NCBI GenBank assembly: GCA_000708835.1
Contig: DF237268.1
Coordinates: forward strand, 1-64,000
Reading direction: 5' to 3'
Length of the DNA: 64,000 bases
DNA from: Klebsormidium nitens
Taxonomy: Eukaryota; Plantae; Klebsormidiophyceae
Shown here in pieces: positions 7,801 to 42,454 of this stretch (position 1 is its first letter; every line of letters begins with the position of its first letter). Under the pieces are notes generated by a model. That model saw only the letters and a program-made list of their open reading frames with translations. It did no database searches and had not been told where the DNA came from. Both the position numbers and the translations under genes were made by a program.

Positions 7801-10800
7801 ATGGCTACTTCTATGTGCTCTAGTCAGCATGCTGGGTGGAGCGCCATGCTTTGCCCCTCGCAAAGCAGCCCCTGGGCCAGCAGGCACGGTGAGCCTTTGT
7901 CAAGGAAGGCAACGCAGGTCCTGCTGGGTTTCACTAGGTGGCATTGTGTACCTTACCTGTACAACATCAGCTCCTGGCAGGAGCAAGGCTTGGATCTTGG
8001 TATGCTCAATCTTTAATACTTGCCTTGCCTGTTTGTGGTCCAGGTGTCGCGCTCATAAACCATTCACATGGAAGTCTTCACAAGAGCGCCGTGTTTTGCC
8101 ATAGAATGCTGGTAAGTTAGCAATTGCCCTCCTACTGTGTCAACATATATCTGAATTTATAGGACCTATAACAGCAAGTGAGTTGTCCTTTTCAGGATGA
8201 TTTTTTCCCCAACACTGCTTCGACATTGCTGATTTGGGGCTGTGGGGTGGTCTCCGGCATGGTGATACCGCCTATGCTCCAGGGGCTGCTTGCGCTTGTT
8301 CCTGCTGCTGTGTCTGTTTCTGGACAGCTATGCACCACCGCAGATTTGCACCACCCTGCCATCAGAGGCACTTGGGCACTCTGCCTCACACCAAGGCTCC
8401 AGAATTGGCTAGGGAGACAACCTGGCCTTATATGACAAGAGCATGTGCATCAGCAAAGTGCATATGTCCCGGCACAAGGCAGCCTATGTAACACGTTGCT
8501 CCTTCTAAGATCATGATCAGGGCCGTTTGTGTTGTTGACAGTGTAAGGCGCCCTACGCTGGGCAAGGAGCACGAGAAGCTGGAGACTGGTGGGGACTTGG
8601 TGTGGCAAGGTGCACGGCTACATTGCTGGCCGCTGTGCCTGTGCACACTTGTATCGGTGCCTGTTCACCCAGTCGGCCTGCAGGTGGGGCAAGGCAAATT
8701 GGCCGCCGGAGGAGCGTGCTTGGTGGAGCAGTGGGAATGGGGGCCGGAGAAGCGGGGCTCGAAGGAGATGGCAACGAGGACGGATGGGATGACGATGACG
8801 GCTGGGATGACGAGGATGGTGAATGGGAGGAGTACGGGGAGCTAGAGGAGGATGGGGGGGAATGGGGGGACGCAGAGTGGGAGGAGGAGGAGGACGATGA
8901 CCAGGGGGAGGCGGAGCAGGGGCAGGCTGCAGAGGCTGCCAGGCAAGAAGAAGGTGGGGAGGAGCAGCCGCCGGTTGAAGAAGGTGAGGATAGGGTGCGG
9001 TGTCCCCAGATTTTCTCAGTCCAACACAATGGAGCAAGATTAAGGTAATTGGTCATTTCATTCATTCTTGACCTTGATTATTGGTGATGTACATGGGTTT
9101 TTAGTGATATCGTACACGCTTGCGAAAGTCCTCGAGTGGAGAAAGCGCACAAAGTTGAAGAAAAGTTGCTCATGGCACTGTATGGTGATTCCTGTCGCTT
9201 CTGCTCCAGACCCGCTGGCCTCTCTCGCCATTGACTACTCCGTTCCCTTGGAAGAGGAGGCGTGGCCCGCTGTGGCCGCGCGCGTGGGCCAGCTGGACGC
9301 GCCCGCGCTGGTGCAGTGGCTGGAGGGGCAGCCGGACTGGGAGGCCGTACTGTGGCGCCTTGTGAACGTGCCCCCGGCAGATGGGCAGTGGACGCGCCAG
9401 GAGGCGGTGCGCCAGCGTCGGCGGTGGGTGAGCCAAGCGGAGGAGGGTGCCCTGGCCGCGGCTGCAGGCATCGAGCTGGAGCGCGACTTGGCGGAGGAGG
9501 GTGCGCAGGAACTGAGTACGGGTGCGCAGCAGGCGGGGAGCACTGCGGCAGAGGGACTGGCGGCAGCCTATCGGCATGTGGCGGACCGGCGTGCGCAGAG
9601 CAGCATGGGGCGGCTGATTGCGGGCACGCAGGCCGTGCTGGCGGTGGAGAGCAACAAGACGGTGGCCCAGCAGCTGTCGTACTACTACCGCGGCCTGCCG
9701 CAGTGGGTGGAGGACGAGGTGGCCCCGCAAGCCCTGGGGCCCGTGGCGCGCCAGGTGGCAGCTGTGGCGCAAAACGTGCAGCAGCAGATGGACGGCCTGT
9801 GCGGGGCCATGGAAGAGGAGCTGCGCACTGCGGTAAGGGGAGATTTACGGAGAGGCTGTGGAGAACGACAGAGATTGTTGCTCTTTCCATGAGCGCTTCC
9901 TTGTGATCCACAAGTGCATTGATCAGATGTCAGCCGCTTGGCTGCTTGAAGTGCCCGTCACGTATCCGCTTTGCCCGTGCTCTCAGGGCTGAGCTTCTTG
10001 AACGTCCTGTTTGGCATGAACTTTATGTCCCCTGAAGTGGTCAAGTAATCGCACTCACTGGGTGGCTCATACCGTGCTTGAAGCCTCGTCTTTCCATTGG
10101 GCGGCTCTAAAATGCCAACTACCTGGAGCGCCCCCATCGCATTTCAAGCAGGAATGAAGCCAGTAAACAAGTGTGTCCGAGAAAGCCGACTGTATTAGTG
10201 GCTGGCTTGCCACGGAGGGAGGAGAAGGAAGAAGGACAACAAGCCTCCATATTTTACCCAGCTCAAGCATGGACATGGCTGTTGGGGAGACCTTTTGCGT
10301 TGTTTCCAACCAGGCATATACCAGTTTATCTTTATCACAGCAACAGTGGGCTTCTGTTTCTTTTTAATGATGACCTGAACGGTGGCTGCTTAGCTCAGCC
10401 GAATCCGCCATGGCTGCTGTTGACGTCTGACCCAATTTGGAGAGTGCCGGAAGCAGAAAGTCTGCTGGGGGGGCAAAAGATGGTGTATTTTTGCTCAACA
10501 AAAGCACACAGCAAAACGTGGAGCCTGTGGGATGCCCTTTGCCGTTACTTTGACAGATTTGCTTCACTCTTTGTGTCCCAGCTGCAGAAGGGCTCGTGCT
10601 GGTAGCCACTGCGCTAGCACAGAGCTCCTTTGCAAAGACTCATCAGAGCAGGATTTGGGGTTCAAAGCGGTCGGATCCGTGTCCCTCGGTTTAGGCTGGG
10701 AATTCCGTGCATTTCTCCAGGTGCTTCAACCAGTTTTGACCGTCCAATCTGCATATGGACGAAGAGAAGTCCCTGTGCTGTCGATTTCTGATTCAACAGG

Positions 10801-13202
10801 TTTACTCCCATGTTTACTTGAACCCTTCGCCTGACGGACCTTAATGCCAGACAGGAACGTGTGACTCTCGGTGCAGGCTCAAGAGGTGTACAGCGAGCTG
10901 CGGCTGGCGGGCGCAGAGGGCCTAGCGGATCGCGTGGGGTTCCACCTGCTGGGGGGCGTGGAGGAGGCGAAGCAGCAGTATGCAGCGCACAAGGCGGAGC
11001 GACGTCGGCAAGTGACGGTGGCGGTGCGGGCGGAAGAGTTGGGGGCGCTGGAGACGGGGAAAGGGCTGGCGCGTGCGTACCAGGAGGACGCGCGCGATGT
11101 GAGCCACGGCATCCTCAGCCGGCGCGACCTGGAGGTGCGCAAGGCGTTCATGACGCTCGAGGAGGACGAGGTGGCGCCCAAGCTGAAGAAGCCGCCCACC
11201 CACGACGAGGAGGACGCGGCCGCTGCGCAGCTGGCCCTCACGGCGTCACCGCCCCCCGCGCCCCCGGCCCCGGCCGTCAGCCAGTTCGACCCGTACGCTC
11301 TGTTCGCCGTGCGAGCCGCCCAGGCGGGGCTGCTGCCGCCGTTGAAGCATGACGACGGGACGGTGCTGGTGTCGGAAGCGGCGCGCGCCAGGGCGTTCCA
11401 ACCGTCCCTGAAGCAGCTGCGGCTGCAGCGCGAGGAGGAGAAGAAGAAAGCGATGGGCATCGAGTGAGTGCACCAGGCCCTGCACTGCGTGCGCAAGAAG
11501 GTGGCGCAGGTCTGCCTCTTGCTGGCATGCTGACAGTGCATGACAACGACTGTGCTCGATTCGGCACCCATGCGAAGATCTGCCCGTGGCAGGTACTTCA
11601 CGTCAGGCGCTGCTTCGGGCCACCACGTGGGCCCTCAGGGCGGGCGCGTGTTCCCGCCCGACGACGAGTGGCGGCCCACGCTGGGCCCGATGAGCGTCGA
11701 CGAGGAGGTGGACGCGCTGGCGGCGTACCTGCGCACGCAAAGCGAGAGCGACTACCTGCACATGAAGGCAGCCGACATCCAGTTTAACCGCGACCCCGTC
11801 ACATGGGACATGACCTGGGACGACATCAACGTCTGTGAGCCGCCCCACCATGAGACGCTTTTCGTCGCAGAGAAAATTGTGATATTGAGAGCAGTCTCTG
11901 CGAATGCGGGGCAGAATGGGAGGCGTCGGGTTGACATTGTCAGGACCGTCAAACGCCTTGCCTTGCGTGGTCTCATGTTTCAAACGGACGCAGGAGGTGG
12001 AGTCATGACTTCCTCCGGGTCTCTGGCTGCGGCTCCTCGGGCGGCCCGCCACACTGCGCGCAAAGCTGCCCCCATAACCTCGCGCTGCCTTGTTGCATGT
12101 GCAGACTTTGATGGCGACTCCCGCATCGAGATCGACAATCTCATCAACGCCCCAGACGAGAAGCTGAGCTTTGCTGGGCCCGAGTGGGAGCGACCGCAGA
12201 GCGCCTGGGAGTTCATCCACACGGTCAGTTCCGCCCGTAGGCCTTGGGTAGCCGAATGCGGCAAAGGCCAGCTTGCGCAGGCTCCAGAAACCAACTTGTT
12301 TGCTGTTTGGAAGCAAGCGAGAGCCCGAGCGGCAAGAAGATGCCTTGTTGCAAGCATGGTCTATTGTTGCATCCCTTGAGAGCACGTGGTCTTGCTGTGA
12401 ATGGCTGGCCTCACCTGCTCTGAGCGTATTGGTCGCCCCTTGCAGATTGGTCGCCTCTTGCCCCCTCAGCCCGACATCCCCGAGACTGTGGAGTACCGCA
12501 GTGTGCCCAAGGTAGGCCGCCCACACCCAGCGGGTCTCCTCAGAAGCCGTCCGAAGCATGTCATGCTTGGGCGCCTAAACGTTTACACACCAGTGTCGGC
12601 AGAGGCAGCTGGGTTGTGGGCGAACTTGGATCACGCTCCCGCAGCTTTGGTTCGAAGTAGGAACGAGCGGGGAGAGAAGCGCCTGGCCGGGCAAATCTTC
12701 AATCAAGGCGTACAATCAAGGCGTACGATTGTCGCGGGCGCCTTGCTCCTGTGCGTTGCTATGGCAGGCATTTTGCCGTCCTTGCTGGCGTTATACCGCT
12801 GACCCCGCGTCGTGTGCTTGGCTGCAGTGGGAGCGCGAGTGGGGCCCTCACCCGCCGGCCATGCTGACGCCCGAGGACGAGCCGCTGGCGGTGCCGGCCG
12901 TGGAGGAGGAGGAGCGCGGGGAGGCGGCCGCGCTGGAGCTGGCCGAGGACGTGGGCGACGAGCTGGAGGACGACGAGCTGGAGCTGGCGCTGCCCAAGGG
13001 GGCCTTCGCGGAGGAGGACGACGGCGCGATAGCGGCAGGGGCGGGCGGCGCGCAGGGGGTCGACGTCAAAAAGTTGCTCAAGGGGGCTAAGAAGGAGTTC
13101 TCGCCGCGAAAAGGATCGACGGACGCGCTAGATAGATTAAATATCAAATCCTTACCGGACGATCTAGAGCTATTGGCCTCGGAAGATGAGGACTACCGAT
13201 GA
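7801..13202 (+). CDS. Large acidic protein whose C-terminal part resembles pTAC12/HEMERA/PAP5 (plastid RNA polymerase-associated protein); 5' exons uncertain
   Basis: Phase-compatible exons at 8684-8983, 9210-9832, 10877-11463, 11593-11834, 12105-12224, 12446-12511 and 12828-13202. Candidate first exon 7801-7888 is Ser-rich and transit-peptide-like. The spliced segment ARAR...RLQREEEKKKAMGIEYF...TQSESDYLHMKAADIQFNRDP...DDINVYFDGD...NLINAPDEKLSFAGPEW aligns with the recalled Arabidopsis HMR sequence. Confidence 0.62.
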
Positions 13203-14531
13203 AAGGTTGAAAGGCTGGCGACCAGAGTAACCTCCTCAAAATTTTCTAGCTCCGCCCCACACTTTCAGAGTGACAGTGGCTCACTAAAGTAAATGGGGAA
13301 TGTAACGTTCGATCTAGCGCCCAGCCGCCGTGAGGCGCGAACCGCGATCGAAGACATGTATAGTAGGCATTGTGCCGCATATCATGGATTCATAATTCTA
13401 GCTGAATGCATGACAACAATTGTCAGAAGCGTTCGCAATTCCAATCAAGTATAGATAATTGTCATGAATGGTTGTCATTTAACCGACAGTACCACTTGAA
13501 TACCCGGTATGAAGAGTACCTTATTCTTCATGCCTGCAATATTACATGGGTTTTTAATTCAATCAAGGGCATCATTGGTTGTATATCATGTATTCGAGTT
13601 CATCACATCAACGTACCTACAGGCTCAACCCATGCATATAGCCCATTCATGCGATGATTGCGCCGTCAAATGGGGGCCGCCGCACATGGGAATCAATACA
13701 CAGATCGAAGTTGCGATTCACAACCGAACTGGCTATAACCTCTATGCGCGTGCCACCGTATGAGTGACTGTGCCAGATATGGTTACAACTTAATTCGGGC
13801 CGCGTATAATCATCATTTTTTCCCCCACCTTCTCATGACCGTGTTGGCATCACCGAAGTTGGCCGCTCATTCGATGTGGTGAGGACTTTCTTCTTTTGTC
13901 GCTTGTGCTACTGCCGTTCATTTCCATTCCCCACTCTAGTCTCGAGCATTGCACGCCGTATGTGATACTGACAAGCTGCCTAAGGACTTTAGCCCCAAGC
14001 TCTTATCCCAGCTGCTCAGGCCTGATTTGAATGGGCCGGGGATGGGCCGCCTTTGCTTTGCTTGTTCCGTGTGTGACCTTTGCATGTCGGCTGGAATCGG
14101 CAACCAGCACAAGCCCCTGCACAAGCCAAGAGCACAAGCCCATAGCGTCTGCAGCCTGCAAACTAGTGTTTGGATTTGTAAACCGCCGGTTCCTTTTTCC
14201 CCTCCAAAGAAAAGATCCCCAAAGCTTTGAAGTACGGGGCAGGGGTTTTTTAATGGTCCGGCGTTATGCACTTCCAACCTAGTTTGCCATCATAATGCAC
14301 AAGCCACGAGAGTCTCCTGCCTACCATGTTCAACCTACCCGAATCGGCGCTGCAAGATTCCAAGGTATCCTGATCAAGTTGAGAACAAGTATAAGCACAA
14401 CTGAAATTCCAAGGACATTGATGAGAAGCATTGTAAGCAGGACTTGTAGCGTTGATGCGGTGTACTACGGACCTCTGGTAGGTAGGCATAGGCTAGCCAT
14501 CGCAAAGCAGAAGAGGACATACACAAACTCA

Positions 14532-36955: not shown

Positions 36956-39900
36956 ATGGGTTCCTCCAGCGTGGACTGGAAGCGCCTCAATTCCCCCTTT
37001 CCCCCTCCCCCCCGCTCACTTCCCGCCTTCTCCCCTTCCCTTCACTTCAACGAGCAGGATGTAGGGGACATTGAGCTGCCCATTGGCCAGCACTTCGTGC
37101 TTAATTGGGAGACTGCGTGTGGGGGTCGTCTGAGTGTGCGCCATGAAGATGACCCCACCAAGCTGCAGTGGGCCACCCCCCCTGGCCGTGGCTTTGTCGT
37201 TGCGGCGCAAGGTGAGCACCGGGCCGAAGTGGGCCCCCTGCAGTCAGCCTGCAGGCAGCAGGGGGGCAGTGATGTGACAGCAGCCTTGGGGCAGGAGAAG
37301 CCTTGCCGGCGCTCCCAATCTTGTGCTGTCGCTTCGTACCCCGCAATTGAGTGTCCTTTGACAACCCCTCCCCCCGCCTTTCAATCCGCGCAGGCGAAGC
37401 CCTGGTTGAAGAGTCCCGCGGCTCATTCGCCATCCACGACACTGCCGCGCTGCTCCTCCCACATCAGGTGGTCACCCATGTGCGCCGCACACCGGACGGG
37501 GGGGCGGAGGTTCACGGCGTGCTGTGCAGTGACTGGGCCGCTGCGCACGCGATCGTGGCGGGCCAGCGCAGCGGGGTGGGCGGGGGGCGCGGCTGTCCTC
37601 GGTGGCGCTGCTGGGCCGGCAGGGCCTGGTGGCGGCCCCCCCGCCAACTGGTGGTACGCTACGCAGCTGCTCTGGTCTGCATGGAGCACGCAGGGGCATA
37701 AAGCTTGGGTTTTGTCGCGACAGCTCGTGCGTGCCTCTGTGAGATGTGTATTGAGTAGTCAATGGTCCCCCTCCCCCAGCTCTTCAGCTCCGAGAAGTAG
37801 GAGTAGGTGCGGGCCCTGACTGTGTCTTTGTGGTGTGCAGGCCCCCTACTGGCTCACATTCCAAGAGACCGGCACTCACCGTCTTACCTTCCACCTGCGT
37901 GTGGCCCCTCCCTCGCTGCTGCCCCCTGGTCCTTCGGCTTTCCCCCATATAGCCACTCTGCCACATTGCTCCTCCGATGGCCGTGCCCCGCTCTCACCTG
38001 GCCCCCCTGCGTGGGCCCCGTTCGCTTGGCTCAGGAGTTACTGGCAGAGCTCTGCCTCCGTGCGCCCATCGGACCCCCTAGAGCCCCTTCTCAGCAATTC
38101 TCCCCCCACCCCCCAGCATCCCCCCCTGAATCGGGTTGGCCTCATTTACAGTAGTAATGCCGCGGAGCGCTTCTTTGGGTTTGGAGAGCAGTTTTCGTTC
38201 TTTGACTGCAAGGGGCGGCGCGTGAGCGTGCTGGTCCAGGAGCAGGGCCTCGGCCGCGGGGACCAGCCCATCACAGCGGCCGCCAACTTTGCGTCGCACC
38301 GCAGCGGGGGGACCCCCGACTCCACGTACGCGCCCGTGCCGTTCTACCTGACCAGCCAGATGCGCTGCCTGTTCCTGGACAATTACGAGCCCGCGCTGTT
38401 CGACCTAACTGCCCCCGACCGGGTGGCCGTGCACGTGCACGCAGCAGACATGCGCGGCAGCGTCCTCGTGGGGGCCTCCCCGCCGCAGCTCATCGAGCGC
38501 TACACCGCCGTAGTGGGGCGCATGCGGCGCCTGCCTGATTGGGTCCACGCGGGGGCCATTGTGGGCATGCAGGTGATGTGCATCCCTTTTTCGTTCCCCT
38601 TATCTTTCACTGTGAGATTCTGAGGTAGTGGCGGTACTCAACACACTGAGCTTGGTCATAGCCAATGATCACATTTATGACAGTGGTCGACAGTGTTTGC
38701 TTCAGTGAGTCTTCCGACATATGCACCAATGTGGGGATGATTTACGGCTGCCGTATCGTTTGATTCTTCTTTGGCCTGTTTGCCTGTGGCCCCTTCAGGG
38801 TGCTCATTGTCTGTGGCTCCCCCGCTGAGGCAGGCCATGTTTGTCCTTGCTTGCAGGGCGGCACTGAGCGCGTCCTGGGCGTGCTGCGCAGCCTGGCCGA
38901 GCTGGGGGTCCCGGTGGCCGCCGTCTGGCTGCAGGACTGGTGCGGCCAACGCAAGACCAGCTTCGGTACGCAGCCCCTCCATACGGCCCCTCAGCACCTG
39001 CCTCATCGTCAACCCATCATTGCTGGCAGTCTTTTTTGCCTTTCGTGCTGAGAAGCCCACATGTGCACTCTCGATCTTGTGTTTAGTCCCTTGCGTCGGC
39101 ACCGTCCGCCTGGCGGCCGTGCTGCTGCTGACGCGTGCTGTGCGGCGTGGCAGGCAAGCAGCTGTGGTGGAACTGGGAGCTGGACACGGACCACTACGCC
39201 GGCTGGCAGGAGCAGCTGCGCCCGTATGTCGAGGAGCACAACATCCGCATCATGACCTACGTCAACCCGTACCTCGCAGACGTAAGCAACAACAACAAGC
39301 TGTTTCGGAGTATCTTATGGCTCGCTGCCAGCTGCGACTTGGTGGGTTACACAAGCCAGCTGAGCGTTGGGTCGGACAACATGGTGATGAACTGTCTGTC
39401 TGTTGCTCGTTTAGTCTGGCCGCTGGAAGGTTTCCGACTTGCGTGCTGATGCCGCTCTGTCAGCGGTGTCCCGCAGGTGTCTGCGAAGGCCAACGCGCGG
39501 CGGTCGCTGCTGGCGGAGGCGCTGTCTGCGGGGTACCTGGTGACGACGCGCGCGGGGGGGCCGTACTTCATCGAGAACACCAGCTTCCACGCCGCCATGG
39601 TGGACCTCACCAACCCGGCCGCCGCGGCCTGGCTCAAGGACGTCATCAAAACCATGCTGCACACCTGCGGCGCAGCAGGGTGCGCCGCCTGCCTCCAATA
39701 GTTGTTGTGGAGAGCTTTTGTCCATGCCAGATCAAGTTGCCAGAGTGCAGGAAGGTTCCTGATGCTGCTTGCCTATGATTATGGGAAGGGTTGATTCCTC
39801 TGGCCAATTCGCTTAAAGTAACACCCTGTAACCCTCTTCACTCGGTTGCACCTCTGGTCGCACAGCTCGAAACTGGTCCGTTTTGTCTGACCGCTGGCCG

Positions 39901-42454
39901 CTTCGTCGCAGGTACATGGCAGACTTCGGCGAGGCCCTCCCATTTGACGCTTGCCTTCACAGCGGTAAGCACGGACGTTCATTTCTGCCGTGGCCTCGAG
40001 CCGCTCTCTCTCTTCTTACTGCCATCTGCAAGCTGTTTCGTCGTTCCTTGTTGGCAGTCGCGAGTCCCTCTTCTCGACGCCTTCTGATCCGGCTCGTCCT
40101 CTGCCTGTGCTCAGGCGAGTCCCCCGACAGTGCCCACAACCTGTACCCCGAGCTGTGGGCGCGCCTCAACGCGGAGGTCTTCGAGGAGTACGCCGCAGAG
40201 CGTCAGGAGGGCCGCTGCGGGGCGCACGCCCCTCTCCGCCTGCCAGCCCAGCCTCCGCAAGAACCGGCAGGCGCAGGGGGCGCGGCGCTCCTCGAGGAGC
40301 GGGTGTTGCAGGCCGTTGCCGACGAGCTGGCCGCGGCTGGCGGCTCGGCTGGCGAGGCCGCCCTGGAGGCGGTGCCCGAAGGGGACGTGCCCCTGGCCGA
40401 CTGTCTGGACCAGGCCCTGCCGGCCGCGCGCTCCGCACACAACCTGGAGGCCCTCGTGCTGCCCGACCCTGAAGCGGGAGAAGCGGAGGCAGGGAAGAGG
40501 TCGCCTGCGGGCGGAGATCAGGAGTTGCCTCAGGACAGCTGCGCAGTGGCAGCGGACAAGGGCCGCATCGAAACAGATGCGTGCGGACATGGCGGGGAGG
40601 AGGGCAGCGCGAAGCGTCTCGAGGCGGGGGCGGAAGAAGACGACGGAGTGTTCTTCATGCGGGCGGGCTTCCGGGGCAGCCCGCGGCTGGCGCGCCTCTT
40701 CTGGCTGGGCGACCAGGTGACGCGCAGACCGAATCCTCCTGCTCACCATCTTCCTCCACGCTGGCGACCCTAGTGGCGGCAACTTGTCAAATTTACAGGC
40801 TCACAGCCCCAAAGTCTGTGCAGAGGAACTCAAGGAAGCTCAGACTCTTGTAGATTGCAGTAGCTCTCACTGTGACCTTGGCAGCTTCTTCGGGTATGTC
40901 TCGGTCTTCCTTGGCACCGGCTGGTGTCGAGCAGGGTTTGCCAGGCAGAGTGTTCCTTCATCCGGGCGTGTGTTGAAACGTTTTCGTGGCACTGTGCCCA
41001 GATGGTGAGCTGGCAGCGTCACGATGGCATCAAGAGCGCAGTTACCGGCCTCCTCACGGGCGGCCTGGCGGGCTATGCATACAACCACTCCGACATTGGC
41101 GGGTAAGGTCCGGTAAAGCAGAACTCAGGGAGGCCGCTGCTTTGGCGGAGTCTGAACAGCACCTAAGGATTCTGCAAGACAGAGGACGCCATATGCATTA
41201 GTGCCACCTTCCTTACGAGCTATCGTCGTCATACGAGCTACCATCGTCAACGACTTTTGAGTTGAACGTCCTTTACGGGCCAGAATGGACTCAAATATAG
41301 CATCAACGTCGGCATTCGTTTGTGGAGGCCGGTAGGAGTTCATTCTCGCGGTCCTGCCGGTCTGAGCGGCGCGGTGCCCGCGGTGGCGCAGGTACACCAC
41401 GGTGGTGCACCCGCTGATCCGGTACCGGCGCAGCGAGGAGCTGCTGCTGCGCTGGATGGAGCTCAACGCCTTCACCACCATCTTCCGCACGCATGAGGTC
41501 AGCACATCAGAAAACGCAACCAGTTGCCGCAACAGCCCCCAGCTGCCAGGTGTGCATTTGTCTCGATGGAATCTCCGCTCGTAAACGTTTTTTGTTGTCC
41601 ACCGTTGCTTTGACGGCGTTCGGCCTGTCTGTCCGCCGCAGGGCAACATCCCGGGCGCCAACGTGCAGTTTTACTCGAGCCCGCGCACGCTGGCCCACTT
41701 CCGGCGGTGCGCGCTGCTGCACCAGGCGTGGGCGTTCTACCGGCGCCAGCTGGTGCGCGAGGCCGCGGACACGGGCCTGCCCGTGGTGCGCCACCTGTTC
41801 GTGCACTACCCCGCCGACCCCAAGGTCCGCCGCTGCCACGAGCCAACTCAATTGGTGACGTATTGCGTGGCTGCATTTGTTGAACAGCATCTGACACGGT
41901 GTTCTGAATCGACCGCCCTGCTACTACGAGGTCGCAGGATTTGCCTGATCCACGCCGCGAAAATGTAGCGGTATATTTAGAGACTTGCTCCGCGGCCGCA
42001 TCCTCTGACACTTTCGCCGTTGTATGCACTCTGCAGTGTGTCAGAACCTGCCCGTCGCCTTCTCCCTAGAACCAAGCGGTCAAATCCAGGCCAGTGGCAG
42101 GCTCTTGCCTGCGGAGCCAGTCTCCAGCACCTCGTATTTTAATCTAAGCCGCTTGCCTTCGTGCACTTTGCGCAGGTGTGGCGGCTGACGTACGAGCAGT
42201 TCCTGGTGGGCACGGAGCTGCTGGTGGTGCCCGTGCTGGACCGCGCCGTTGCCGGCGTGGCCGTCTACCTCCCGGCCAGCGACGCGGGGGAGCGCTGGCG
42301 CCACGTCTGGACCGGCAGAGAATGGGCCGTGCCGCCTGCGGGTACGGCGTTCCGGGTGGAGGCGGCGCTGGGCTACCCCGCCGTTTTTGTGAAGGCTGAG
42401 TCGAGCGTGGGGAGAGAGTTCGAGGAGAACTTGAGGGCGATGCACCTGGTGTAG
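36956..42454 (+). CDS. Glycoside hydrolase family 31, YihQ/sulfoquinovosidase-like, multi-exon
   Basis: FGFGEQFS, GMQ/GGTE, WLQDWCGQRKTSFG/KQLWWNW, YVNPYL, DLTNP, YMADFGE (nucleophile Asp 39922-39924), FFMRAG, WLGDQ (acid/base Asp 40711-40713), HSDIGG/YTT, RSEELLLRW and RTHE/GN are colinear with recalled E. coli YihQ. Confidence 0.93.

Follow-up and report, generated by a model that had tools for sequence, protein, structure and literature searches.

A probable Klebsormidium counterpart of the plastid polymerase protein PAP5, related to the land-plant protein in its central domain

The land-plant protein known as PAP5, pTAC12 or HEMERA (HMR; At2g34640 in Arabidopsis) is an accessory protein to PEP, the plastid-encoded RNA polymerase. 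In Arabidopsis HMR, the regions PIR1 and PIR2 and the activation tail carry a nuclear phytochrome role. The subject of this report is a gene of the alga Klebsormidium nitens, located in a window of 64,000 nucleotides (contig DF237268.1 of assembly GCA_000708835.1, positions 1 to 64,000 of the forward strand), the product of which is probably the counterpart of PAP5 in the Klebsormidium lineage. A first-pass annotation of the window, made from the letters alone, had proposed a remote pTAC12/HEMERA/PAP5 homologue spread over four exons at 11290-12511.

The position of PAP5 on the plant polymerase is known from the Sinapis structure. An unfolded N-terminal thread (N184-D254) precedes a seven-helix central domain (V255-G384), which is followed by a C-terminal thread (G385-T441), and residues 442-529 are not visible (bioRxiv 10.1101/2024.10.25.620210). 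One face of the central domain lies on the beta-sheet of alpha-1, and a kinked helix (L278-E306) faces the rim helices of beta'' together with the C-terminal helix of PAP8 (bioRxiv 10.1101/2024.10.25.620210).

A preprint on the Chara transcriptome lists a Chara orthologue of PAP5, g48045, among ten Chara PAP orthologues credited to Nishiyama et al. 2018; it also credits K. nitens with 8 of 12 PAP orthologues, which it does not name, and Chlamydomonas with five (bioRxiv 10.1101/2023.02.12.528195). As an orthologue has been reported for Chara, the PAP5 family predates the land plants, and this accessory protein of the plastid RNA polymerase is older than they are. According to a 2024 review, HEMERA-type regulators are not present in green algae and arose with the adaptation to land (PMC11132900). 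A 2026 preprint on the Chlamydomonas PEP does not use the terms PAP5 or pTAC12; among the new subunits that it describes, only PEPS3, PEPS2 and PEPS12 are related to land-plant PAPs, and most PEPS proteins are not relatable to PAPs by sequence (bioRxiv 10.64898/2026.06.23.732312). The order and timing of PAP recruitment to the plastid polymerase is a question that has been sharpened by the 2024 plant and 2026 Chlamydomonas PEP structures. A search of the literature found no paper on pTAC12 in Klebsormidium.

Structure and expression of the gene

The gene consists of eight coding exons at 8106-13202 on the forward strand, with a coding sequence (CDS) of 2460 nucleotides for a protein of 819 residues. 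The exon boundaries were first called by eye on the window sequence. The exons, and the intron that is important for the comparison with plants, are the following:

7837-8111, forward strand: first exon, with the 5' leader and two codons (coding part 8106-8111; ATG at 8106, then CTG) and the donor GTAAGT at 8112; contig ends match 8081-8110 and are joined to 8541/8542 in four contigs
8542-8983, forward strand: exon E1, frame open from the exon start, joint 8983/9210
9210-9832, forward strand: exon E2, transcript joints on both sides
10877-11463, forward strand: exon E3, transcript joints; the C-terminal part, 11288-11458, is very probably homologous to HMR 252-305
11593-11834, forward strand: exon E4, transcript joints; 11699-11833 is very probably homologous to HMR 335-379
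11835-12104, forward strand: intron 4, 270 nucleotides, phase 1, joint 11834/12105
12105-12223, forward strand: exon E5, 119 nucleotides; 12107-12199 is very probably homologous to HMR 381-411
12446-12511, forward strand: exon E6, 66 nucleotides, phase 0 to phase 0, transcript joints
12828-13202, forward strand: exon E7, the last coding exon, including the stop; the 3' untranslated region extends to at least 13387

All junctions between the coding exons are of the GT..AG type, and the reading frame is kept throughout. The transcript evidence comes from spliced contigs of four public runs belonging to four studies, presumed to be RNA, which were compared with positions 8500-13400. In the contigs of these runs, the six internal joints are found exactly as modelled (8983/9210, 9832/10877, 11463/11593, 11834/12105, 12223/12446 and 12511/12828, each given as the last position of one exon and the first of the next), and a seventh joint, 8111/8542, leads to the upstream exon in the same spliced contigs. 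The contig depth is 27-120 in exons as compared with 0-3 in introns. As the exact skipping of GT..AG introns at such a depth is hard to explain otherwise, the contigs are read as spliced transcripts. The gene is expressed, spliced and nuclear. The four exons at 11290-12511 that the first-pass annotation had placed here are real, and the transcripts, which might have shown other splice junctions, have the same joints as those predicted. The translations given for them occur in the window, in the C-terminal part of E3 and in E4, E5 and E6. The extent of the gene had been underestimated, as these four exons are only a part of the eight.

The 5' limit of the first exon at 7837 rests on the assumption that the contigs and the genome are colinear upstream. 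The sequence ATG-CTG-GTAAGT of this exon is kept in a related alga that is about 91% identical (contig L005). The internal methionine at 8737 is a lysine in the same relative and is therefore not the start. If the leader is colinear with the genome, it carries an upstream open reading frame (ORF) of at least 57 codons at 7846-8016 (there is also an ATG at 7801), ahead of the ATG at 8106, and this frame could serve in translational control.

Two observations concern the introns. Parts of several of them are covered by contigs of low depth (1-3). Intron 4 is in frame and free of stop codons, so that E4, the intron and E5 form a single ORF of 279 residues at 11540-12379, and retention of this intron would add 90 residues inside the conserved domain.

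Similarity to the central domain of land-plant PAP5

The plant sequences for the comparison were fetched from metagenome contigs of the Joint Genome Institute (JGI) with a degenerate DNA pattern of 38 letters, which encodes the 13-residue motif D-P-V-Y-P-T-x-N-Y-x-Q-D-P. This gave 40 loci (L006-L045), which are land-plant pTAC12 genes and intron-less contigs resembling complementary DNA (cDNA). The ORF of 527 residues in L041 matches Sinapis PAP5 in cryo-EM entries of PEP (8QMA_H and five more) with 1042 bits, and it also matches the tobacco (8W9Z_H) and spinach (8XZV_G) proteins. The three strings of Arabidopsis HMR that the first-pass annotation had quoted were accurate, as all of them occur verbatim in this ORF. 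The plant alignment, A2, combines L041 with the full ORFs of L011 (monocot type), L015 (another seed-plant type), L006 (moss type, which has the genomic twins L023, L033 and L034) and L009 (a further non-seed type). The hits of a word search with A2 include proteins under the name 'PLASTID TRANSCRIPTIONALLY ACTIVE 12', and the best 120 of the 326 hits are all from angiosperms. Plant-associated JGI metagenomes and metatranscriptomes hold nuclear genes of the host and full cDNA-like contigs, and a short degenerate DNA pattern can retrieve a eukaryotic family reference that is beyond the reach of protein searches from this query.

The homology was tested one exon at a time with hhalign against A2. 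Residues 36-80 of E4 align with HMR 335-379 (probability 91.4%, E value 9e-7, 28% identity), residues 2-31 of E5 with HMR 382-411 (E value 1.4e-3, 30% identity) and residues 138-194 of E3 with HMR 252-305 (E value 8e-3, 26% identity). The three blocks are colinear with HMR, and the register between E4 and E5 is exact: V80 of E4 corresponds to Q379, the split codon to I380 and F1 of E5 to W381. The second block, which had been described as aligning without gaps, is thus reproduced by hhalign. The C-terminal part of E3 covers the opening helices of the PAP5 central domain, among them the kinked one, and the algal blocks map onto this domain and onto the beginning of the C-terminal thread.

A hidden Markov model (HMM) of the plant proteins gives the same picture. 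When the 1904 stop-to-stop pieces of the window in six frames are scanned with the filters off, the E4 piece ranks first with an E value of 9.5e-4, and the second-ranked piece has an E value of 0.41. The exon-wise matches are colinear and in register, at HMM positions 280-309 (E3), 340-381 (E4) and 393-415 (E5). As a control, composition-preserving shuffles, 2000 for each segment, were scored by the same HMM. The 19.4 bits of E4 residues 36-80 and the 8.0 bits of E3 residues 131-195 are reached by none of the shuffles, and the score of E5 is reached by 9 of them. E2, the N-terminal part of E3, residues 1-35 of E4, E6 and E7 are indistinguishable from shuffles when scored against the plant HMM, and hhalign of E1, E2, E6 and E7 against the plants, used as negative controls, gives E values of 0.15-0.4.

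The gene structure provides further evidence, which is independent of residue similarity. Plant introns were placed by mapping the cDNA-like ORFs on genomic loci of the same plants. In the plant genes, a phase-1 intron interrupts the codon that directly precedes W-G-G-D, at CDS nucleotide 1138 in the Arabidopsis type, 1300 in the moss type and 1267 in the monocot type. The window intron at 11835-12104, also of phase 1, splits the codon that is aligned to the plant one, just before F-D-G-D. An AG acceptor is found at this spot in 37 of the 40 plant loci; two of these 37 (L006 and L009) are cDNA-like, so that their AG is fortuitous there. The next intron is of phase 0 in both, being placed after HMR E420 in plants and one codon earlier in the alga. 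The exon between the two introns measures 119 nucleotides in the alga (E5) and 122 in plants, and the one after it 66 nucleotides in the alga (E6) and 69 in the Arabidopsis and moss types. As introns occur roughly once per 350 nucleotides, an exact match together with a match within one codon is very unlikely to arise by chance. Judged from these alignments, the phase-1 intron is ancient and common to the algal gene and land-plant pTAC12.

Searches with single algal sequences were blank throughout. With phmmer, neither the separate exons nor the E4-intron-E5 frame found PAP5 among PDB sequences at an E value of 10 or less, a search that is underpowered for segments of 35-45 residues at 28% identity. 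Against 1.84 billion representative proteins, the hits of phmmer with the E4-intron-E5 frame were limited to fragments of close relatives (three) and spurious matches (three, P0003-P0005), with no plant match and no rival family. Pfam gave nothing on any exon, so that neither of these searches offers a family better than the one proposed in the first-pass annotation. Word searches with the 279-residue ORF and with E2 returned only ORF fragments of close relatives, a look-up of E4 in the ESM Atlas gave noise, a metagenome search with an E4 alignment (A1) found nothing, and an exact look-up of the 279-residue ORF found no record. There is no annotated full-length protein for the gene among the matches of the search of 1.84 billion proteins, of the word search with E2, or among the best 120 of the 326 hits of A2. 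At about 28% identity, a block of 35-45 residues without gaps reaches a BLAST score of about 20-25 bits. Since such a score is significant for a chosen pair and not database-wide, and since the block is split by an intron, the blank searches say nothing either way.

By these sequence comparisons, the protein is very probably homologous to PAP5 in the central domain, and the part shared is the central domain only, HMR about 252-411. The homology that the first-pass annotation had claimed therefore holds for this domain, on the evidence of hhalign, the HMM scan, the shuffles and the phase-1 intron, and it does not extend to the N-terminal motifs or to the activation tail.

Lineage-specific regions and algal relatives

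The first 65 or so residues of E1 are rich in arginine, alanine and glycine, nearly free of acidic residues and fast-evolving, a composition that makes them a possible transit peptide. Residues 14-53 of E1 have a weak colinear match to HMR about 112-150 (reached by 1 of the 2000 shuffles, hhalign E value 0.15), the key residues of which are not kept in L005. The rest of the exon, at 8740-8983, encodes an acidic tract with regularly spaced tryptophans (D-G-W-D-D, G-E-W-E-E, A-E-W-E-E), and it is nearly invariant in the 91% identical relative. E2 is conserved at 65-91% identity to the relatives, and no plant counterpart of it was found (hhalign against the plants, E value 0.4). The AlphaFold2 model of E2 consists entirely of helices and has no confident fold, with a mean predicted local distance difference test score of 48. 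The N-terminal 130 residues of E3 are lineage-specific and form a conserved helical region together with E2. The acidic tract and this helical E2/E3 region amount to about 480 lineage-specific residues.

The first 35 residues of E4 (11594-11698) are rich in glycine, proline and histidine; the first 23 of them are invariant in all relatives and the remainder is nearly so. They are unlike the plant helices HMR 306-334, the place of which they take. A weak repeat-like match of this stretch to the Mitsuba-1/galactose-lectin motif (E value 0.002) was taken as chance. E6 is rich in proline and 95% identical in each relative, and has no detectable plant similarity. E7 has an acidic tract and a basic patch, and its acidic-hydrophobic C-terminus is invariant in the relatives. 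Its likeness to the plants is limited to a short motif in colinear position, A-x-D-[IV]-G-[DE] (hhalign E value 0.37). A conserved C-terminal activation domain was considered and dropped, as the match of the algal tail to the plant tail is reached by 617 of the 2000 shuffles.

The relatives used here are contigs L001 and L003 (about 67-85% identical to the window gene), L002, L004 and L005 (about 91%), the database searches having yielded only ORF fragments of close relatives. They represent three related algal lineages; their exons are those of the window gene, arranged in the same order and free of frame breaks. The C-terminal part of E3, E4, E6 and the last 45 residues are the most constrained parts, and E1 and E2 are freer. 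The homologous blocks rank among the most conserved parts of the protein in these lineages, and the C-terminal part of E3 is nearly invariant.

L001 and L003, which come from a single metagenome (3300060284) and are distinct variants of the gene, have an extra intron of about 300 nucleotides inside E3 near residue 47-50 (L001 4859-5767; L003 7800-8700). It is not present in the window gene or in L005, and an intron has therefore been gained or lost within this algal group. Elsewhere in the window, GH31-like ORFs are found at 36956-41410.

Origin, possible function and comparison with known systems

Since a diverged central domain and an ancient phase-1 intron are both shared, the algal gene is read as the counterpart of PAP5. 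As far as the sequences go, it is probably an orthologue, and its being the PAP5 counterpart of the Klebsormidium lineage, with the central domain shared, is probably the best overall explanation of the observations. Several observations weigh against this explanation. In the roughly 130 aligned columns, only 26-30% of the residues are identical, and searches with single sequences never reached PAP5. The plant N-terminal motifs, located at HMR about 84-250 and with the PAP8-pairing strand among them, have no significant match in E2 or in the N-terminal part of E3. The helices HMR 306-334 between the E3 and E4 blocks are replaced by a stretch rich in glycine and proline, and no conservation of the C-terminal activation region was detected. 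Nor does the alga have the plant phase-2 intron in R293; the phase-2 intron of the window gene lies 14 codons further on.

It could be argued that two helical, charged and partly low-complexity proteins resemble each other by chance, and that the pair was picked because a match was being sought. The identity is low, single exons are too short to reach PAP5 database-wide, and the acidic tracts in both proteins give spurious weak matches, of which the second-ranked piece of the window scan is an example. However, three independent exon alignments are colinear and two of them are in exact register, none of the shuffles scores as high as E4 or the C-terminal part of E3, and E4 comes out on top when the entire window is scanned without bias. 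The two genes also have an intron of identical phase in the aligned codon, with the next one displaced by a single codon. A chance likeness is therefore very improbable and close to refuted. Even more improbable, to a degree that it can hardly be entertained, is a decaying or non-functional copy of the gene. Only the upstream ORF in the leader speaks for it, whereas the transcripts are spliced and intact, the reading frame stays open in every exon, and all exons are kept without frame breaks in the three related lineages.

An alternative of a different kind accepts that the central domain is shared by descent but supposes that the algal protein is no PEP subunit. It would then be a paralogous or pre-recruitment form acting elsewhere, in the nucleus, the cytosol or another plastid process, and the PEP role of the plant protein would have come later. 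The conservation is indeed limited to the central domain, the PAP-binding segments and N-terminal motifs of the plants are absent, and about 480 residues are lineage-specific. The dating of HMR-type regulators to the adaptation to land (PMC11132900) and the Chlamydomonas preprint, in which PAP5 and pTAC12 do not occur and only PEPS3, PEPS2 and PEPS12 are tied to PAPs, point in the same direction. On the other hand, what is conserved coincides exactly with the domain that touches the polymerase core in the plant structure, and in the algal relatives this part is strongly constrained. The N-terminus resembles a transit peptide in composition, and Chara is reported to have PAP5. Taken together, a role outside PEP is unlikely.

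If the gene is the PAP5 counterpart, association of its product with PEP in the plastid can be predicted by analogy with the plant protein, and this prediction is slightly favored. After import into the plastid, the algal protein would dock on the polymerase core as PAP5 does. The lineage-specific part of about 480 residues may replace the plant N-terminal thread, which binds PAP8, PAP3 and PAP6/PAP10. A nuclear phytochrome role like that of HEMERA is improbable. The gene may be one of the PAPs that have been counted as missing from K. nitens, having escaped both annotation and BLAST-level searches. It offers a candidate for pull-downs of PEP from streptophyte algae, and a natural test of whether the nuclear role of HEMERA is a later addition.

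The closest described system is land-plant PAP5/pTAC12/HEMERA (At2g34640; 8QMA chain H, 8W9Z chain H, 8XZV chain G). The segments corresponding to HMR 252-305 and 335-411, which are very likely homologous, occur in the alga in the same order, and the alga has the shared phase-1 intron before [WF]-x-G-D and the nearly shared phase-0 intron after it. An acidic tract that follows the core, and a C-terminus that is acidic and hydrophobic, are found in both proteins, but the likeness is one of composition only. The algal protein has 819 residues, whereas the plant proteins have about 490-590. The plant motifs P-P-Y..S-Y..D-S-T-S-G, W-W-N-W-R-K-P and W-Q-R-R-R-P-D, and likewise the PAP8-pairing strand, were not found in the alga. 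As to the regions with a nuclear role in Arabidopsis HMR, PIR1 is absent in the alga, PIR2 is partly conserved and the activation tail is not detectably conserved. The old part of the protein would thus be the central domain, and the plant N-terminal thread and activation tail are not detectably shared.

The Chlamydomonas PEPS proteins are encoded in the nucleus and decorate the core of the plastid polymerase in a green alga, and several of them are located at the sites of plant PAPs. Chara g48045 is reported as a PAP5 of a streptophyte alga. The 'early algal form' of the first-pass annotation has to be qualified accordingly: a homologue is very probably present in Klebsormidium, but a PAP5 orthologue had already been reported for Chara. 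Klebsormidium branches earlier than Chara, and its homologue would push the origin of the PAP5 core back by one node. It is conceivable, with a likelihood somewhat short of even, that the polymerase-binding domain of PAP5 predates the split of Klebsormidium from the lineage of Chara and the land plants, and that it is found here in a larger protein, with a helical region of about 480 residues and without the PAP8-binding thread or the activation tail. Such a protein would belong to a PEP architecture intermediate between the PEPS of chlorophytes and the PAP sets of land plants. The PAP5 family and its algal member in Chara were known before; what the Klebsormidium gene would add to them is a strongly diverged and larger variant.

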